A DNA stretch of 64,000 bases. Source: Tetramitus jugosus (Eukaryota > Protista > Heterolobosea). The position numbers and the translations under genes are program-made. The stretch spans positions 424,978 through 488,977 of the forward strand of contig OW569368.1 of the NCBI GenBank assembly GCA_937625935.1. Direction: 5' to 3'. The notes below the pieces were generated by a model that saw only the letters and a list, made by a program, of their open reading frames with translations, ran no database searches and was not told the DNA's origin. This document shows, one piece after another, positions 56,272 through 64,000 of the stretch (position 1 is its first letter; every line of letters begins with the position of its first letter).

Positions 56272-57255
56272 CTATGTATCTAGAATCAGTCGATTCCAGA
56301 AAGAAGGACGTGAGCGAGCTGATTCCAGCGTAGGAGGGCGAATAGCTTCCCTGATATCATTGTTGATGCGTGTAATACATGTGTCCAGAGCAATGTAGAA
56401 TGGATGCGAGGTGCCAAGCGCTTTGAAATAAGGGATTCCGATGGATGTTACTAATTTCTTCACAAGTGGGGACACAAAAGCCACCGACTTGTACCGTTCA
56501 GTGTTCTGGAGTATATACGTAATTATGGTGGATATTTTGTCTTGCATGTTCAATCTGTACAGATACACCAATAGCATTCCAATGGTTTCATGGTCAGAGG
56601 AGCTAGAGTAGTAATACGTGCTGCTCACTCTCGAACAATATTGAGTCCAAATGCTATCGACAAGATTGTTACACATGAAATAATCGCTTGGTTGTATACT
56701 TGAACCTATGGTTGTCGGTGCAAGTTCTCCAATAAATTTAACACCATTCTCATACAGCAACAGCTTGTACAGACTACATCCGATTTGAAGATTTGTAATG
56801 CCCAATCCTGGCCTCACACCTGTATCAAGCAATTGTTTGACATGATTATTCCACTTTGTGTTATTAATCTTGAATTGAGAGGGATCCAATTGCCAAGAGT
56901 TACGAACATTGTCATCAAACAGTGTTTCTTCTCGACGACCAAAGGGTGATTTCGATGACACAGCAATAATCTCTTTGGCTTGAGATTCAACAAGAGGTAA
57001 ACTAATCATGGAGGGAATACCATTGACAGTAATGGCCGGAACAGCAAAATCAGAAGACAATACGGAACCAACTGCAAAATCACCTGGTCTCGCAACATTT
57101 GTAAACAAACTTTCAAATCGATCAACAATTCTTTCTTCTTCTTCTCCTTCATCTTCACTATCCACTTCGTCATCTTCATTGTCATCTTCCTCTACTCTGC
57201 TTGTTTGATCTTGTTGTTCCTGTTGTGCTTGTGGTGCTTGTGCAGAAACAGGCAC
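56272..57255 (-). pseudogene. 2OG-Fe(II) oxygenase-like protein lacking the catalytic core
   Basis: SPFGRREETLFDDNVRNSWQLDP...N.KW...LYKLLLYENG ends just where the HxD motif should follow. Confidence 0.6.
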
Positions 57256-57705
57256 TGTAAGGTTTAGAGCAGAAGCTGAAGAGGACGAACTGGGTGCTGC
57301 ATTTACCTCTTCTTGACATGAGTGCTCTGGGGAGCAATGGAAACTTCCTGAAATGGCAAATTTTGCACTCCTTGTTGGGCATCGATTGCCGTGTTAGGAT
57401 CAGTTTCAACAGTAGTATCTGGTTGTTCCATCCTCTTCTTGAGCAGGGATATCCTCCATTGTGTCCAAGGTATGTAAAAAAGTTTCAGCTTTGTTTGAGC
57501 TCTCTGTGTTGTGATCTTTTTTTGGAGTGGCGGAGTTATGGCGGATCAGAAAAAGTTCGTCATCCAGCGTATCGCACAAGAGTCGGTATCATGCTATGAA
57601 TATCTATGTTGGTGACGATCATCCATGATGACTCTACACTGTGGTCCACGCACTTTTTTTCGGGAAATTTGTTGAATCGATCACCAAAAAAAGAAGGCAC
57701 ATCCC

Positions 57706-58745
57706 ATGGGCAGAAAACGAAAGACTGTTATTGCATCAACAAAAGAAGAGTGCAAATTGCCAAGGAAGCGCAAGAGATCTGCTCAAGAAGTGAAAGAGAA
57801 GAATAAACAGCACAAACACACGAAACTTTCACTTGAAAAGACTACTCTACAACAATTGCTGGCATTGAAGCAAAAAGAATATCATGATAAGAGCAATTCT
57901 CAGTTCGTGCATGAGTTATTGAACTGTTACGACGAAGTACAGAGATTGAAAGAGCGGTTAGCAGATGTTCACAAAGCTATTGAAAATCCGAAGTGTATTA
58001 TATGCGAAGCTGCTTGCGATGATTTATTTTTCAATAAGATCGAGCAGCTGGCTAAGGTCCAAAGCAATCCACTGACGGATACCAAACTAGAAGCAAGAAA
58101 TAATGGTATTTATTTTAGAGTTCGTCAGTCAGATCATGCCGAAAAGTCTCAGGTGTCAGAGAAATGGAATATCTATCAGCTGCGTTACAGCATGTTCATA
58201 TTTTACCTGCTAGAATCAATGAAGTTGTTGAAACAGTTCTCAGTGTATTGGGTGTGAAAGTGAATGGACTTTTTCCCTCCCTGCAACAGCATATTCTCAT
58301 CACCCACCGCTATGCAATATATTCAGACATGTTGTTCTATTCTACTACTAGTGACCGACAATTTTGTATCAACACAGACGACTTCAGTCGTAATTATAAG
58401 GCGCATCAGGTAGTAGCACTAACATCCTCCAATCAATCTGGTAATATGGAGCATCATACTGCTGATATAGCTAGAATACCATCCAAGACGGTTGAAGCAA
58501 AAGAAAACTCGTTGTTCGAGATACGTGACTACTTCAAGCGAATACATGAACTGATGAGTGGTCACGAAGATATCGAGAGTGATATATTACTGCGTGTGCA
58601 GGCTAAACAGAGTGATAGATTCATTGTGGAACAGTTGCTCGGTGAGCGCATCAATGATCACCTACAGAAGCATGGAAAAAAGTATTTGATCACTGTTTTC
58701 TGCGCTGCACATATCGCAAATACTGCTGTTGAACTTGCCTGTGGG
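57706..58745 (+). mobile_element. Frameshifted, 3'-truncated DDE-type DNA transposase fragment
   Basis: Basic NLS-like N-terminus and coiled coil, then INTDD..R, QSDR and FCAAH (CxxH) pattern; frameshift near 58150; cut by the MITE/telomere junction. Confidence 0.55.
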
Positions 58746-58949
58746 GGGAGCGTCCAGATATTATTTCTTACGCCCTAGGGAGGGGGTCTGAGAAATTTAT
58801 TCAAATATTTATTCATAGGGGGTCTGTTGATCTCAATCCTAGTAGGATAATTAGTCTAACGGTCGAATTTACAGGAAAATGTGTTATTCAAATTTATTCA
58901 AAACAGGCTGGGAGGGGGTCAGTGGTGAATATAATATCTGGACGCTCCC
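58746..58949. mobile_element. 204-bp MITE with perfect 19-bp TIRs
   Basis: GGGAGCGTCCAGATATTAT (58746-58764) and ATAATATCTGGACGCTCCC (58931-58949); GGG on both flanks; internal direct repeats GGGAGGGGGTC and AAATTTATTCAAA. Confidence 0.85.
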
Positions 58950-60327
58950 GGGGGGTTGGGTTTGGGGATACATAAACCTAGCTCAACCCTTTTTTATTAG
59001 GCCTAATATGGAAGAGGAATGTCTAAATATGGTTTTTGAGTGATTTTGACTTTAGGTTGGGTTTGGACTTCATAAGCCTAAACCCAACCTATAGAGATTA
59101 TGACTGTTTTTAACATTGTCTAACAGGATTTAACAGGATTAAAGCTGTATCGTCTCGAAGAGACGATCGCTCCCTGCTGTAATTAACAGATTTTCTCTGC
59201 AACAGGATTAAAGCTGCAACAGATTTTTATGATAGATTTTTTTCAGAAAAGCATGAGATTAACACTGGACTGCATGATAAGAGACCTGTTTTTTTCAGAT
59301 TTTGGACTGGAATTTTAGACCTCTAGTATTCATTTGAAGCATTAAATCTGTTATTTCTGTCATTTTTTTTGTTTTTTCGGGTTGATTGAGTTGCATTTCA
59401 GTACTTTGACTTTTGATTACCTTGAAATTCTCTTGACTTGATGATTTTCACCAGTTTTAGAGATAATACGGATACATCCTGGATTCCCCAACCTAAGGAA
59501 ACGATTTCCTTATATAGTAATTTTTTTTTGAGATTTTTTATTGCTCTCGGAGCTTCAACAGGATGAGATGAAGAGATCGGCGTGATTTCAACTCGATTTG
59601 AGCTTTATAGGCTCGTAGAGCCGATATATCTGTGCTGTATTAAACAGATTTTTATCGGCAACAGTGTTAAAACTGCAACAGATTTTAGACGACTTTGATT
59701 CTGTATTGGGCGTAAGAGGTACAAGTTAAACATGATTTCTTTGTTTTAAATCAGAGTATTGGGACATTATTTGATCATTTTTCACATAATTTCCGACTAA
59801 AAGTATTTTTTGACTCAGTGTCTTAGTACTTGATTTTTCAGAAATTTGGATTGACTTGATTTAGTGTTTTTCTGAATAGAATCGACAGTTCTTATCTAAT
59901 AATCACTGTAGAATCAGATATTTTATCTATTTAAGAGCCCATTTGATTTAAAATTTTGTCAGATAGTGACATAGTTTGTTTTCCAATTTTAATCTAATTT
60001 ATAGTTGGAATGCCAGATCCAAAGCGTCAGAAATCCAGAGAACTAACTTTTTCTGAGTGACATTTCAGATTTATGATGGAAATCAACTGAGAATCTTTGA
60101 GAAAAATGGTTCTTTTGCGAGAGATTAGCGCTGAAAGAGTGAGAAGCAAAACTTTGTTCTTTCTTGAATGCAGAGTTGAATACCCAGACCCAACCCGTCA
60201 TAACTGAAAAGAAAGAGCAATGATTACTCATTAAACGTGTATTGACTCGCTTGATTGCCTCGAATCCTTCCAGATATGGAATGAGAAGTTTTCGATTTTC
60301 GACAAATACTCATGAATGTCAAGCGAT
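58950..60327 (+). repeat. Internal telomere remnant followed by two diverged non-coding units related to the ends of the YR element
   Basis: GGGTTGGGTTTGGG-GATACAT at 58953-58973; 30-bp exact repeat 59470-59499 = 60347-60376; homologous blocks 59175-59227/59633-59686 and ~59400-59442/59825-59860. Confidence 0.8.
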
Positions 60328-60475
60328 GGGTTGGGTTTGGGTTTGGGGATACATCCTGGATTCCCCAACCTAAGGAGAGCTATTTCCTTATATATCATGT
60401 TTTTTTTTTGCTAGCTATCATTGCACTGGCAGCGTTAGCTGACAGTGCTGAACATCTATATGAAAATTTGAGCTT

Positions 60476-62605
60476 TTATTCACTATCGCTGGAGAGAACA
60501 ATCTCCTCAATATCATACTCCTCTTCACTCTCAGGTTCTACCACTCCCTTATATTGCTCATCCAATTCTCTCTTGAGTCTCTGGTATTTTACCTTGATTG
60601 CTTCAATTTCGTCCTTCTCCTTCTTTGCAAGGACACCTACCTTTCTCTTGTATGTTCCCTCATTCAAAACTAGAGTTGTACTCAACTTTCCTCTCTTCTT
60701 AAATTTCTCTGCCAATTTCTGTGCAACAAATAGTTGAGCTTTCTCATCGGCATAGAACTTTCTTATGAGAGAAGTAGCACCATAAACCCTTTCAATTGAG
60801 ACCTTTCTATCTCTCTTCTTCTCATTAATGTACTGTTGGTCCTTGGCCAACAATATTTTGCACTCAGCAGTTTCCGCCTCTTTCAAGCAGTTTCTCTTCC
60901 AATAGGCAAGCCAAGCAATATCCTTACCACTATCATCATTGATAATTTCATTATCCAAATCAGAATCAAGACTTCTATGATAATCCTTGAAGTAATTTGG
61001 AGGTTGAAGTCTTCTAGCCTTTGGAGCCCACTTCTTTGGCTTTTCACTATTGCACTCATGATAGATGATAGACTGAATGAGGTCAACATCAGTAATATGA
61101 GCATTATCATCAATAGAAGCTATTGGAACATCCTCATCTAAGAATCCCATATCCTTAGCCAATTGACTCAAAGTCCTAAATGATTCAATTCTCTCAGATG
61201 GTTCTTGCAATGAATTGATGGATGAGAAATGTTGAGTAATCCATCTATCATAAGGTTTGAGACTCTCCTTATTCTTCCAGTGAACAAAGGTTGCAAGTGT
61301 ATCAGCTACCTTGTCATCAAACACTCCATTGTTCTCAATTCTGTTTCCCAACAGACAAGTAACAACCAGACCAGATCTCATTGATCTTGTAGAGTACCTC
61401 TTGTCAATAGTTGCAGAGAGACTCTTAATAGCATTACTCATACTCTTGTTAGTCCAAGTAGTAAACTTTCCATGGGGAGTGAACAATGGTTCATCTTGTA
61501 GACCAGGATTCAAAGTGAAGTCACCCTTAATCAAACATTCAGCAGCACTACCTTGCTCAAAAACTCCTCTGATATCAGCCAGGTAAATGAGTAATGAGAT
61601 GTTTGGACACATCTTCAAGTTGACCCAACCAAGCAAGTTCTGTCTCCACACATTAGCAAGTAAAACCTTGTCCTTGACAATCTCCATATCGAGACAAAGA
61701 CGAATCTTGTTGTCAGCAACAATCTTGGTCCAAGTCAAATGTTTCAACTTGACATGTTCAAAAGAATCAGCTCTGAGACCTCTTGCTCTGCCTTGTGCTA
61801 AAACAGCATCCAATCTTGCACCAGAATCAGTTGTTTGATCACATAAGAGTCTTAACTTGACCAAGTCAGGATTCATCAGAGGTTCAACCTTGAACTTGTC
61901 ATTTCCAAACTTTCTGAGTAATGCTCTCAAGGTGTTCTTGATATCAATGGTAAATTCAGCTCTCAAATTTCTATCTCTCTTGGTCTTGTAGAGAAAAGCC
62001 AAAAATCCATAACAGAAAGTACTCTGAATGGTAGAGAACTGATAGTTCTTATCAACCTTGAGCCAATAGAGATACATCATCAAAGTGAGCTTCTTCATTG
62101 GATATGGAGTAGGTTGATACTGGAGGAAGTCTGGAAACTTGGAATCCATCTCTTGCAAGAAAGAAAAGTATCTTCTTTCAGCAAAGATGAACAAATTAAC
62201 AGTAGCAGGAGCATACTGTGTATTGGAGACATTAGCAGTAACAGTAACTGCAGCCTCATTCAATCTTCCCATTTCACCAAGAGAATCAAAAGTAACCTGA
62301 GGGAACAAATCATCATCAGCTCCACCTCTAAAAGAGTCATTGATGTCAGTGAACTCTAGGTCTCTGATGGATCTTGAACTATTGACAGAGTTATTCAACA
62401 GAGTCATCTCAGATTCAGCAATTGTTCTTTCGACTCTAGCCTCCAAGTCATCACCTTCATTGAGTTCAGCCAAGTGACCAAGGTCAAATTCCTCATGATC
62501 ATCCATTTTTTCAAGATCCTTGAACAGTTGGTCAACAGTTTTCTCAAAGGTAGCATCAGCAGGGCAAGCAGCAGCAGGAATAGTAACAGCAGTAATAGCA
62601 GACAT
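60476..62605 (-). CDS. Tyrosine recombinase (integrase family), 709 aa
   Basis: Core-binding-like LMMYLYWLK..KNYQFSTI; catalytic R278 (GLRAD), K313, CP....L..YL, PLF, R407-S-M-R410-SG, W443 and Y452 (Cre-like 9-residue W-Y spacing). Confidence 0.88.
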   Translation of the reverse strand: MSAITAVTIPAAACPADATFEKTVDQLFKDLEKMDDHEEFDLGHLAELNEGDDLEARVERTIAESEMTLLNNSVNSSRSIRDLEFTDINDSFRGGADDDLFPQVTFDSLGEMGRLNEAAVTVTANVSNTQYAPATVNLFIFAERRYFSFLQEMDSKFPDFLQYQPTPYPMKKLTLMMYLYWLKVDKNYQFSTIQSTFCYGFLAFLYKTKRDRNLRAEFTIDIKNTLRALLRKFGNDKFKVEPLMNPDLVKLRLLCDQTTDSGARLDAVLAQGRARGLRADSFEHVKLKHLTWTKIVADNKIRLCLDMEIVKDKVLLANVWRQNLLGWVNLKMCPNISLLIYLADIRGVFEQGSAAECLIKGDFTLNPGLQDEPLFTPHGKFTTWTNKSMSNAIKSLSATIDKRYSTRSMRSGLVVTCLLGNRIENNGVFDDKVADTLATFVHWKNKESLKPYDRWITQHFSSINSLQEPSERIESFRTLSQLAKDMGFLDEDVPIASIDDNAHITDVDLIQSIIYHECNSEKPKKWAPKARRLQPPNYFKDYHRSLDSDLDNEIINDDSGKDIAWLAYWKRNCLKEAETAECKILLAKDQQYINEKKRDRKVSIERVYGATSLIRKFYADEKAQLFVAQKLAEKFKKRGKLSTTLVLNEGTYKRKVGVLAKKEKDEIEAIKVKYQRLKRELDEQYKGVVEPESEEEYDIEEIVLSSDSE

Positions 62606-62709
62606 AGTAACAATATTATTAGTAGTAATAGTAATAGTATAGTGTGTGTTTGTTTTTTGTTGGTGTTTTTTGTCGGTTGGTCGCGAATCATTTTATAGGG
62701 CAAAAAAAA

Positions 62710-62790
62710 ATCTCGGAAGAATCTCGGAAAGAATCCCGCACGCGATCCCGCAAAAAAAATCCACCGCACGCGGATCCCGCACGACGAATC
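62710..62790 (-). promoter_or_regulatory. GC-rich repeat cluster upstream of the YR gene
   Basis: ATCTCGGAA x2, ATCCCGCA x3 and CCGCACGCG x2 within an AT-rich region, 105-185 bp upstream of the ATG. Confidence 0.45.
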
Positions 62791-63200
62791 ATTGAAATAT
62801 CCCGTGAGGAATCCTAACTGACCTTCAACATTTTTACAGTGAACTGGACGTCGCGACTTGGTAGTATGTTGAAGTTGTGCTTTTAGAGATATTCAGCGCA
62901 GGCAAAAATAGTTAGGATGTATTATAAGATGATTCTCAATAGAACACAATGTTATCTACGTACTCTATTGTAAAGAATGAGAAAGCAACATAGAATGACG
63001 GAGGGTGCAACTCCCGAAAATATTTCGAAGGGCAAAAGAGTATAAAAGTGAATCTCTGATGCACTGATCGAAATAAACCAACAAACTCATTAAACATAGA
63101 TAAAGAAGGTTAATTTTTGAAATCTGGGTGAAAAATAGACAGAGAAATGTGTTGGTAAACTTTTTGAGTTTTTAGGTAGAAAAAAAAAAATTGAAGTCGA

Positions 63201-64000
63201 TTTGGGTTTGGGTTTGGGTTTGGGTTTGGGTTTGGGTTTGGGTTTGGGTTTGGGTTTGGGTTTGGGTTTGGGTTTGGGTTTGGGTTTGGGTTTGGGTTTG
63301 GGTTTGGGTTTGGGTTTGGGTTTGGGTTTGGGTTTGGGTTTGGGTTTGGGTTTGGGTTTGGGTTTGGGTTTGGGTTTGGGTTTGGGTTTGGGTTTGGGTT
63401 TGGGTTTGGGTTTGGGTTTGGGTTTGGGTTTGGGTTTGGGTTTGGGTTTGGGTTTGGGTTTGGGTTTGGGTTTGGGTTTGGGTTTGGGTTTGGGTTTGGG
63501 TTTGGGTTTGGGTTTGGGTTTGGGTTTGGGTTTGGGTTTGGGTTTGGGTTTGGGTTTGGGTTTGGGTTTGGGTTTGGGTTTGGGTTTGGGTTTGGGTTTG
63601 GGTTTGGGTTTGGGTTTGGGTTTGGGTTTGGGTTTGGGTTTGGGTTTGGGTTTGGGTTTGGGTTTGGGTTTGGGTTTGGGTTTGGGTTTGGGTTTGGGTT
63701 TGGGTTTGGGTTTGGGTTTGGGTTTGGGTTTGGGTTTGGGTTTGGGTTTGGGTTTGGGTTTGGGTTTGGGTTTGGGTTTGGGTTTGGGTTTGGGTTTGGG
63801 TTTGGGTTTGGGTTTGGGTTTGGGTTTGGGTTTGGGTTTGGGTTTGGGTTTGGGTTTGGGTTTGGGTTTGGGTTTGGGTTTGGGTTTGGGTTTGGGTTTG
63901 GGTTTGGGTTTGGGTTTGGGTTTGGGTTTGGGTTTGGGTTTGGGTTTGGGTTGGGTTTGGGTTTGGGTTTGGGTTTGGGTTTGGGTTTGGGTTGGGTTTG
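63201..64000 (+). repeat. Telomere (TTTGGG)n
   Basis: 800 bp of TTTGGG with the G-rich strand running toward the window end; TTGGG variants at ~63951 and ~63992. Confidence 0.97.

Follow-up and report, generated by a model that had tools for sequence, protein, structure and literature searches.

We analyzed a window of 64,000 nucleotides that forms the right end of a 489-kb contig (C25) of Tetramitus jugosus, whose genome of 26.35 Mb is assembled in 56 contigs. The last gene before the telomere in this window encodes a tyrosine recombinase (YR). It lies in a discrete unit of about 2.85 to 2.9 kb (60328 to 63200) that consists of a telomere-like seed, a 3' module, the gene, and a distal module, with remnants of older terminal units beneath it. 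The features are as follows:

58952-58967, plus strand: older telomere-like seed, heading an inner non-coding unit (58968-59470)
59472-60329 (C25:484449-485306), plus strand: copy of the T-unit (a 1-kb non-coding terminal unit), T-unit positions 1-871 of 990, 83% identity
60328-60347, plus strand: seed GGGTTGGGTTTGGGTTTGGG, 20 nt, the proximal boundary of the YR unit, at which identity with the copy on contig C28 begins
60348-60441, plus strand: proximal (3') module, 94 nt, 80% identity with the T-unit, its first 59 nt up to 90%
60423-60448, no strand assigned: 26-bp palindrome with 11-bp arms and a 4-nt center
60476-62605, minus strand: YR gene, 709 aa, a stop-free open reading frame (ORF) with its 5' end toward the telomere
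62606-62864, minus strand: region upstream of the YR gene, peculiar to the A-type unit here, with GATCCCGCA-type repeats; RNA contigs end at about 62629
62865-63200, plus strand: distal module, 335 nt, with 81 to 85% identical copies near the ends of 11 other contigs
63201-64000 (window end), plus strand: terminal (TTTGGG)n array, in regular register right after ...GTCGA

The YR unit is placed exactly between GGG and TTT of the telomeric hexamer. An earlier note on this DNA had described it as bounded by telomeric sequence on both sides and as free of reverse transcriptase (RT), terminal inverted repeats, and long terminal repeats. Both descriptions held: the 20-mer and the array from 63201 enclose the unit, a genome scan gave no match to the RT domain RVT_1 inside the window, and no long terminal or inverted repeats were found within 60340 to 63205, where just low-complexity A/T runs occur. 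Two telomere-like tracts were observed in the last 5 kb, against 0.005 expected from shuffles. The proximal module contains a telomere-like foldback, GGTTTGGGG..TCCCCAACC, and a run of ten T residues (60400 to 60409). Nine copies of the palindrome are present in the genome, every one beside an A-type YR gene, and two of them carry symmetric changes. Several copies of the distal module directly abut the telomere array, where they head units with differing contents. Between seed and telomere, the unit on C28 is 99.9% identical to this one; ahead of the seed, the two sequences are unrelated. We considered a large segmental duplication and rejected it, because the identity between C25 and C28 ends at the seed.

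The stop-free ORF, a Cre-like predicted fold, and RNA contigs all agree with the earlier description of an intact 709-aa tyrosine recombinase as the last gene. An AF2 model of the YR core (residues 118 to 485) had a pLDDT of 87.9. The Foldseek comparison suggested in the earlier note was run against the PDB, and its top 47 matches were Cre, XerH, XerA, IntI, lambda Int, or the Cre-derived Tre; the best was Cre (E 2e-7), with TM scores of 0.45 to 0.67 for the Cre matches. This relationship was detected by the fold search alone, as a profile of the YR family matched no PDB sequence. The proposed catalytic residues proved to be conserved in an alignment of 25 sequences: R278, R407, R410, and Y452 in at least 90%, K313 without exception, and position 443 as either W or H, with H in four relatives. 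R407 occupies the place of H in the YR catalytic set R-K-H/R-R-H/W-Y, and the RxxR and W-to-Y spacings agree with those of Cre. The sole Pfam match of the window YR itself was a weak one to Phage_int_SAM_4 (E 0.02). PF00589 was matched by 5 of 21 relatives (best E 4.5e-6) and NDC10_II by two (E about 1e-5), and the nearest clusters in a language-model atlas were NDC10_II and DUF3435. The fold, the motifs, the PF00589 and NDC10_II matches in relatives, and the NDC10_II and DUF3435 neighbors together identify the protein as a YR.

Contigs from one oligo-dT RNA run cover 60505 to 62629 of the gene, with depth climbing toward its 3' end, where AATAAA overlaps the stop codon. Strain differences in the ORF are mostly synonymous (20 of 27, the other 7 being non-synonymous). 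The RNA contigs and this pattern of differences indicate that YR function has been retained. The gene encodes an intact, expressed, and active-looking, probably Crypton-like recombinase, with activity predicted from its sequence and model. No protelomerase was among the 50 listed fold matches, and the chromosome ends here are (TTTGGG)n arrays (roughly 0.6 to 0.9 kb where the entire array was covered) rather than the hairpins by which a protelomerase would be recognized; of the palindromic site at which such hairpins are formed, the 26-bp palindrome is the one counterpart here.

The YR family is rare, with 53 representatives among 1.8 billion proteins, and all of its named members are from Naegleria or Willaertia. 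The earlier note had called for mapping of all copies, to see whether each is flanked by telomere and in the same orientation. Copy counts were drawn from search tables and 70 loci in a genome with 112 chromosome ends. The unit does recur at other ends and the family is restricted to telomeres, with at least 45 of the 50 matches in the T. jugosus genome no more than about 11 kb away from a chromosome end; orientation is not uniform, one subfamily occurring both ways. The seven Willaertia and Naegleria homologs examined are all located in the outermost 10 kb of a contig, and homologs in Willaertia, N. lovaniensis, N. gruberi, and three metagenome lineages adjoin (TTTGGG)n or sit at contig ends. 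The subfamilies differ widely (25 to 40% identity), many copies are decayed, and the N. gruberi member carries a chromodomain. B-type YR units have two ORFs, of which the upstream one encodes a coiled-coil protein with no known domain. RVT_1 was absent from the loci examined; other terminal units gave weak matches to it, located in ORFs that reach 1,273 aa and lie a few kilobases from chromosome ends with their 5' ends distal. Literature searches on telomeres of the TTTGGG type and on the subtelomeres and YRs of Naegleria turned up no account of this family. Known here from Heterolobosea only, it is specialized for chromosome ends.

The T-unit carries the same 20-mer seed and 3' module as the YR unit, without a YR gene, and has at least 43 copies in the genome, all at chromosome ends. 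Its proximal end is constant, and its distal truncation points fall at 990, 871, 860, 808, 647, 628, 547, 489, and 393. The copy beneath the YR unit has no seed in front and is missing its distal ~120 nt. We considered that the T-unit might be a read-through copy of telomerase RNA. A further candidate, the 3' untranslated region (UTR) of a Penelope-like element, was rejected, as T-units lie distal to RT remnants and no T-unit match was found where the 3' ends of those units are expected.

In the majority of 24 T-unit junctions, an identical 20-mer and module adjoin unrelated flanks, and seeds are mostly joined to non-telomeric, eroded ends. Even at locus L066, whose recipient end retains 58 nt of telomere repeats, the module is preceded by a complete copy of the irregular 20-mer. 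The terminal units are stacked one upon another, and inner YR units are cut on their distal side, as in the inner copy on C28 and the fossils on C49 and C50; in contigs from other samples, YR units break off at 62130 and 61549, where another seed caps them. Beyond the newer unit, the distal portion missing from the older one was never found. Because older units are truncated and the missing part is absent beyond the newer unit, we infer that units are added at the end rather than inserted.

With a discrete unit, a fixed seed, unrelated flanks, distal truncations, stacking, and a telomere-restricted family all directly observed, the explanation that we tentatively prefer, at a little under an even chance, is that terminal units, the YR unit included, are added serially onto deprotected chromosome ends, that the addition is templated by RNA, and that the YR unit is mobilized in trans. 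The kinds of unit involved would be the A-type YR unit, the 1-kb non-coding T-unit, the two-ORF B-type YR unit, and a Penelope-like RT unit. The fixed 20-nt telomere-like end of the unit itself would be copied onto any available DNA end, telomerase would cap the new tip, and erosion would later trim that tip ahead of the next addition. The template would be a unit-length, C-strand-sense RNA ending at ...CCCAACCC, and the RT that uses it may be of an endonuclease-less Penelope-like or a telomerase-like kind, on the pattern of Athena and Coprina; this RT would also mobilize the YR unit in trans. More speculatively, the YR might act on DNA after addition, in exchange, excision, or resolution of terminal units between ends, with the conserved 26-bp palindrome or the telomere-like foldback as candidate sites.

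Overall, the terminal units most resemble endonuclease-less Penelope-like elements, of which reverse-complement telomeric repeats at the 3' end are a hallmark (PMC8557442). Athena, Coprina, and Terminons attach to ends with the 5' end outward, undergo distal truncation, and stack with short telomeric tracts between them; Terminons also carry extra ORFs (PMC8557442, PMC5537684). When the window unit is read along the coding strand of its YR gene, it ends in reverse-complement telomere repeats, and A-type YR units share with Penelope-like elements these 3' repeats, the outward 5' end, the distal truncation, and the stacking. B-type units depart from them in orientation. Unlike Penelope-like elements, the window unit has no RT, the search for a hammerhead motif was negative, and B-type genes lie on the opposite strand. 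Several results weigh against an RNA template. Neither a hammerhead ribozyme nor any other known RNA was matched in Rfam (E of 5 or less) within 57000 to 63300, the RNA run shows the ORF only, without the seed and 3' module or the distal module, and B-type genes would be antisense to the supposed template, with one subfamily present in both orientations. Moreover, plain end-to-end copying also occurs: a truncated and healed copy at one end of C13 recurs at the other with 100% identity across 2,849 nt.

Alternatively, the unit might be a YR-only DNA element, Crypton- or TATE-like, that is excised as a circle and integrated by its own recombinase at the hexamer in telomere arrays, with T-units as non-autonomous partners. 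The position between GGG and TTT would suit such an element, as it is the same relative position at which TATE of Leishmania inserts (GGG^TTA of the telomere repeats, forming tandem clusters; PMC6681497). However, the proximal tract is a fixed 20-mer where a variable piece of telomere array would be expected, and most often it borders on eroded, non-telomeric DNA. In favor are a YR that is intact, expressed, and subject to purifying selection, a family that is always telomeric in several genera, and the chromodomain of the N. gruberi member, which is reminiscent of heterochromatin-targeting integrases. The 94-nt end common to the T-unit and the YR unit and the telomere-like inverted repeats at the unit ends, which could be recombinase sites, also accord with integration, yet one and the same architecture is shared by units whose contents are unrelated, whose proximal modules differ, and whose several YR subfamilies are just 25 to 40% identical. 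Integration is also at odds with the absence of an older unit's distal part beyond the newer unit. The circle junction predicted in the earlier note, with the distal module joined to the seed, was not found in four runs, which is weak evidence as contigs only were searched. We consider this origin unlikely, and the crossover at the hexamer into telomere arrays envisaged in the earlier note is poorly supported, given a unit-borne 20-mer that sits on eroded ends and also occurs in units without a YR.

The earlier note knew of no described equivalent, but telomere-associated YRs had already been reported in TATE and in endogenous nimaviruses (PMC6681497, PMC10871703). TATE (Leishmania braziliensis; VIPER-like, DIRS order) has a YR allied to Cryptons, as the window unit probably does; both have a host in Discoba, and both are stacked or in tandem at telomeres at a fixed hexamer position, GGG^TTA for TATE and GGG^TTT here. 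In TATE, gag-like and RT/RNase H ORFs accompany the YR and terminal repeats are present, whereas the window unit has one ORF, no RT, and no such repeats, and its proximal telomeric tract is borne by the unit itself. No named kinetoplastid protein was among the matches looked up. Cryptons are interspersed, are thought to move via circles, and have 4- to 6-bp crossover repeats (PMC3212892). As in Cryptons, a single YR ORF encodes the only enzyme of the window unit, there is no RT, and the two ends can be read as a short direct repeat; NDC10_II and DUF3435, which lie nearest to the window YR, represent the Crypton kin Ndc10 domain 2 and the "Captain" of Starships. Unlike the interspersed Cryptons, the copies here keep to chromosome tips, where they look as if they had been added rather than inserted. 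Endogenous nimaviruses (majani-, pemoni-, and whispoviruses) have telomere-repeat-specific YRs linked to their integration at (TAACC/GGTTA)n telomere-type repeats of the host and are thus likewise tied to such repeats, but they are 300-kb crustacean viral genomes with the repeat motif on both sides, and their YRs have arm-binding and zinc domains and are reported to be distinct from Cryptons (PMC10871703).

As unlikely as the excised YR-only element is an ordinary subtelomeric gene family, in which telomerase would heal eroded ends, break-induced replication from interstitial telomere tracts would follow, and the YR would have either a passenger's place or that of a host gene whose role is unrelated or domesticated. 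Yeast Y' elements are, like the units here, multicopy terminal units with one large ORF that are copied between ends, and short interstitial telomere tracts separate the members of a Y' array. The Y' ORF codes for a helicase, and the elements spread through homologous recombination, whereas most joints here lack telomeric homology on the recipient side. The shared ends of C13 and the decay of many copies fit a Y'-like history, but the unit boundaries lie exactly at the seed in copies on different chromosomes, and the conservation of modules at either end of the units points to a dedicated mechanism. Arrays healed de novo begin with irregular GGGTT-type repeats like those of the seeds, so telomerase could have made part of the seed, which counts against templated addition as well; against a Y'-like history, however, the 20-mer has one fixed length and is intact even within a longer recipient tract.

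Attachment of units end-on by the YR itself, in a topoisomerase-like capture, is improbable: cleavage of the donor at the seed boundary, with the YR retained on the C-strand 3' end and ligation to the 5'-OH of a deprotected end, would suit homology-free joints that begin at a fixed nucleotide of the unit, a family strictly bound to chromosome ends, and the 3'-phosphotyrosine intermediate of YRs, which a foreign 5'-OH can resolve, but the seed boundary is not positioned like a YR cleavage site relative to inverted arms, several different modules occur in T-units and other units, and the YR subfamilies are very divergent.

To our knowledge, the telomere-targeting mobile elements known so far are either RT dependent or giant viruses. 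Small YR-only units that keep to chromosome tips throughout a whole protist lineage would add a third route to telomeres. It is possible, though we think it unlikely, that Heterolobosea have a DNA-level system for rebuilding chromosome ends, conserved since the ancestor of Naegleria and Willaertia, in which the YR family and its non-coding partners are attached end-on to telomere-less tips and the recombinase catalyzes attachment or exchange. Such a system would do with a YR what retrotransposons do at the telomeres of Drosophila. The stacked units would form a layer-by-layer record of end loss and repair in these genomes, and with a fixed 20-nt seed on non-homologous ends, the mechanism of joining can be tested directly. 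In addition, the family provides a natural recombinase with putative sites that resemble telomere repeats. The lineage includes Naegleria, the genus of the brain-eating amoeba.

The window forms the right end of a 489-kb contig, in a genome of 26.35 Mb and 56 contigs whose telomere-repeat match count is consistent with arrays on essentially all contig ends. Beside its array, across ~595 nt of non-coding sequence, lies the gene for a tyrosine recombinase (YR), which belongs to the outermost layer of a stack of terminal units.

58952: older telomere-like seed, followed by a 0.5-kb unit, the innermost of the stack
59472-60329: T-unit (~1-kb non-coding terminal unit) that has lost its final ~120 nt
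60328-60347, plus strand: seed, a fixed telomere-like 20-mer GGGTTGGGTTTGGGTTTGGG, preceding the YR open reading frame (ORF); the outermost layer runs from 60328 through the YR unit to the telomere
60423-60448: 26-bp palindrome with 11-bp arms and a GTTA centre, just past the YR mRNA end
60476-62605, minus strand: YR ORF, 709 aa, uninterrupted
63201 to window end, plus strand: (TTTGGG)n array

Neither terminal inverted repeats nor long direct repeats were found in the YR unit (seed, proximal [3'] module, YR gene and distal module), and a genome scan for reverse transcriptase (RT) gave 0 matches inside the window; the earlier note's description of a telomere-flanked, intact YR ORF lacking these features stands as written. 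Contig 28 carries a copy whose 99.9% identity begins at the seed's first base (60328) and extends to the telomere; before 60328 the two sequences are unrelated. The YR unit is thus discrete and bounded at the first base of its seed. A unit on contig 18 opens with the same irregular seed; its YR protein is only 62% identical, yet its length is nearly equal (2855 versus 2852 nt).

Pfam gave only a weak SAM-like match for the 709-aa query, and a YR family profile found no match among PDB sequences. Among 21 relatives scanned, five matched PF00589 (best E value, 4.5e-6) and two matched NDC10_II, a Crypton-related domain of Ndc10. An AlphaFold model of residues 118 to 485, built from 21 sequences, had a mean pLDDT of 87.9. 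When this model was compared with the PDB by Foldseek, as the earlier note had proposed, the YR fold was recovered: the top 47 matches were all Cre, XerH, XerA, IntI or the Cre-derived Tre, with an E value of 2e-7 to Cre and, across the Cre matches, TM scores of 0.45 to 0.67 and coverage of both domains. In a 25-sequence alignment, R278, K313, R407, R410 and Y452 show little or no variation, and position 443 is W or H, the usual variation in the superfamily. A language-model search placed the YR core closest to NDC10_II and DUF3435 clusters. From these sequence and model comparisons, we call the protein a Crypton-like YR, possibly a member of Crypton proper.

Contigs from one oligo-dT RNA run of a related strain span 60505 to 62629, the YR ORF, with depth climbing toward the 3' end of the gene; in the same run, the seed, the 3' module and the distal 570 nt were all without coverage. 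The YR mRNA is therefore shorter than the whole unit. Because RNA contigs cover the ORF and 20 of the 27 listed differences from the window are synonymous, we conclude that the YR gene is expressed and under purifying selection.

When 1.84 billion representative proteins were searched exhaustively with a profile, only 53 relatives came back; those with an organism name all belong to Willaertia magna, Naegleria lovaniensis or N. gruberi. The tree has several deep lineages with local expansions, a shape that resembles a mobile family and is unlike a single-copy host gene. Mapping of the genomic copies bore out the telomere association: of the 50 matches in Tetramitus jugosus, at least 45 are no more than ~11 kb from the end of a contig, against a chance expectation of ~5%. 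Farther in are two decayed fragments, at 15 and 21 kb, and a 30-aa scrap in a contig interior; for one further match no end distance is available. The two fragments, fossil YR units of 90 to 92% identity (L043 on C49 and L044 on C50, respectively; L numbers are examined loci), are distally truncated and carry stop codons and seeds decayed by point changes, and an rve-type integrase fragment (L008:2482-3303, plus strand) adjoins the one on C49.

The same placement is seen in other species. In Willaertia, the distance to the contig end is 0.1 to 9.8 kb for all five paralogues. The gene of N. lovaniensis and a (TTTGGG)n array are 6 kb apart; that of N. gruberi has a contig end at 6.5 kb and, 400 nt upstream of the gene, an interstitial telomere tract. 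In three metagenomic lineages, the gene is 1.1 to 2 kb from terminal (GGGTTT)n. Contigs of W. magna and N. lovaniensis terminate in (TTTGGG)n (L071:9823-9878, L073:13723-13957), so the entire Naegleria/Willaertia group, near which T. jugosus belongs, has this hexamer as its telomere repeat. The N. gruberi homologue (XP_002676414; L074:6001-8766) has a C-terminal chromodomain (PF00385; E value, 4.7e-10), a domain likewise present in integrases targeting heterochromatin. A 4-kb contig in another project's assembly (GCA_037189345.1; L032) carries (CCCAAA)n together with a YR gene of 43% identity; its probable source is a heterolobosean contaminant or resident of that sample.

The ends of the YR unit recur on other units, indicating that terminal units are modular, with a seed and proximal module, a cargo and a distal module. 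The 94 nt adjoining the seed have 42 matches, the great majority ~1.7 kb from a contig tip and always in the same orientation. These 94 nt open the T-unit, which is non-coding and ~990 bp long; every one of its copies, at least 43 in number, sits at a chromosome end. The distal 335 nt occur near the ends of 11 other contigs; several copies abut the telomere array directly and head units with other contents. Several module types are present among terminal units. A second ~1-kb non-coding kind (L025:2461-3478, in flipped orientation; also L019 and L029) has a distinct seed, which ends in GGGTTG, and a distinct proximal module (TCACATATCGG...). B-type units pair a YR gene with a coiled-coil ORF, both pointing toward the telomere, and one YR subfamily occurs in both orientations. 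The upstream ORFs (L014:3233-4189, minus; L015:242-1207, plus; L019:3076-4134, minus) encode ~320 aa without known domains; on contig 41 (L017), this ORF is fused to the YR in one 1107-aa frame.

Terminal units appear to arrive by addition rather than insertion. Most of the 24 T-unit junctions join an identical 20-mer and module to unrelated, non-telomeric flanks, in many cases the distal side of an older unit after erosion. At some joints, recipient telomere repeats are kept (58 nt in one case, 4 to 6 nt in three). Because the irregular 20-mer is intact even there, it belongs to the unit, and copying would begin from a fixed end of the template. Proximal ends stay constant, whereas distal ends have been cut back at many different points and are capped by telomere or by the next seed; YR units on contigs of other samples are cut at 62130 and 61549 with another seed as the cap. 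At the loci examined, what an inner unit has lost distally was never encountered on the far side of the outer one. With age, layers of the stack become internal, as in the C49 and C50 fossils. A polymerase jumping to a template 3' end, or ligation of a defined end, would fit. Arrays capping truncated sequence (L011, L013, L063 and L066) start irregularly (GGGTT, GGGGTT or GGGT), which apparently marks de novo healing; those on full-length unit ends start in regular TTTGGG register.

We tentatively favor RNA-templated terminal addition, with the unit mobilized in trans, although we hold it at slightly under even odds. Read along the coding strand of the YR gene, the unit ends in reverse-complement telomere repeats, points its 5' end outward, is truncated distally and stacks with short telomeric tracts between units, as do the endonuclease-less Penelope-like elements Athena, Coprina and Terminons (PMC8557442, PMC5537684). 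This shared behavior, together with weak RT matches in long ORFs a few kilobases from several ends in the orientation of the YR unit, is the reason for our preference. Against it, a search of 57000 to 63300 found no hammerhead ribozyme, the RNA run shows the ORF only, B-type genes face the telomere with one subfamily in both orientations, and plain copying between ends also happens. Such copying is seen on contig 13, where the two ends (L011 and L012) match at 100% across 2849 nt, including a 3'-truncated B-type YR gene and its healed junction; the truncated frame continues open into telomere repeats. As a general explanation, break-induced copying between chromosome ends is unlikely, since it requires homology, which is absent at most joints. 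The earlier note's model, crossover at the hexamer within telomere arrays, is poorly supported, as it predicts variable proximal tracts and complete inner units, the opposite of the fixed 20-mer and truncated inner units observed.

That note also knew of no described equivalent, but two precedents exist: TATE of Leishmania, which encodes a YR and clusters in tandem at a single position within the telomeric hexamer (PMC6681497), and endogenous nimaviruses, which have telomere-repeat-specific YRs (PMC10871703). TATE and the window unit both place a YR at telomeric repeats; the window unit differs in being YR-only, without RT. Literature on TTTGGG telomeres, Naegleria subtelomeres and Naegleria YRs yielded no description of this family. 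New here are a YR-only terminal unit without RT, an entire heterolobosean YR family restricted to chromosome tips, unit ends common to YR units and abundant non-coding units, and joints pointing to end-on addition.

Two candidate sites for the YR can be proposed. The 26-bp palindrome may be a site of recombinase action or of RNA termination; it has nine genomic copies (the window, C18, two on C28, C49, C50, C22, C11 and C21), each beside a YR gene of the window's kind (A-type). The second candidate is a telomere-like foldback at the proximal end of each unit, in which the seed pairs with an inverted partner. We infer that the YR may act on terminal units at the palindrome or foldback; recombining these sites across chromosome ends could exchange units, remove them or insert them anew. 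The palindrome in the contig 18 unit is identical to that of the window despite the 62% protein identity, and those of C11 and C21 carry symmetric A>G and T>C changes.
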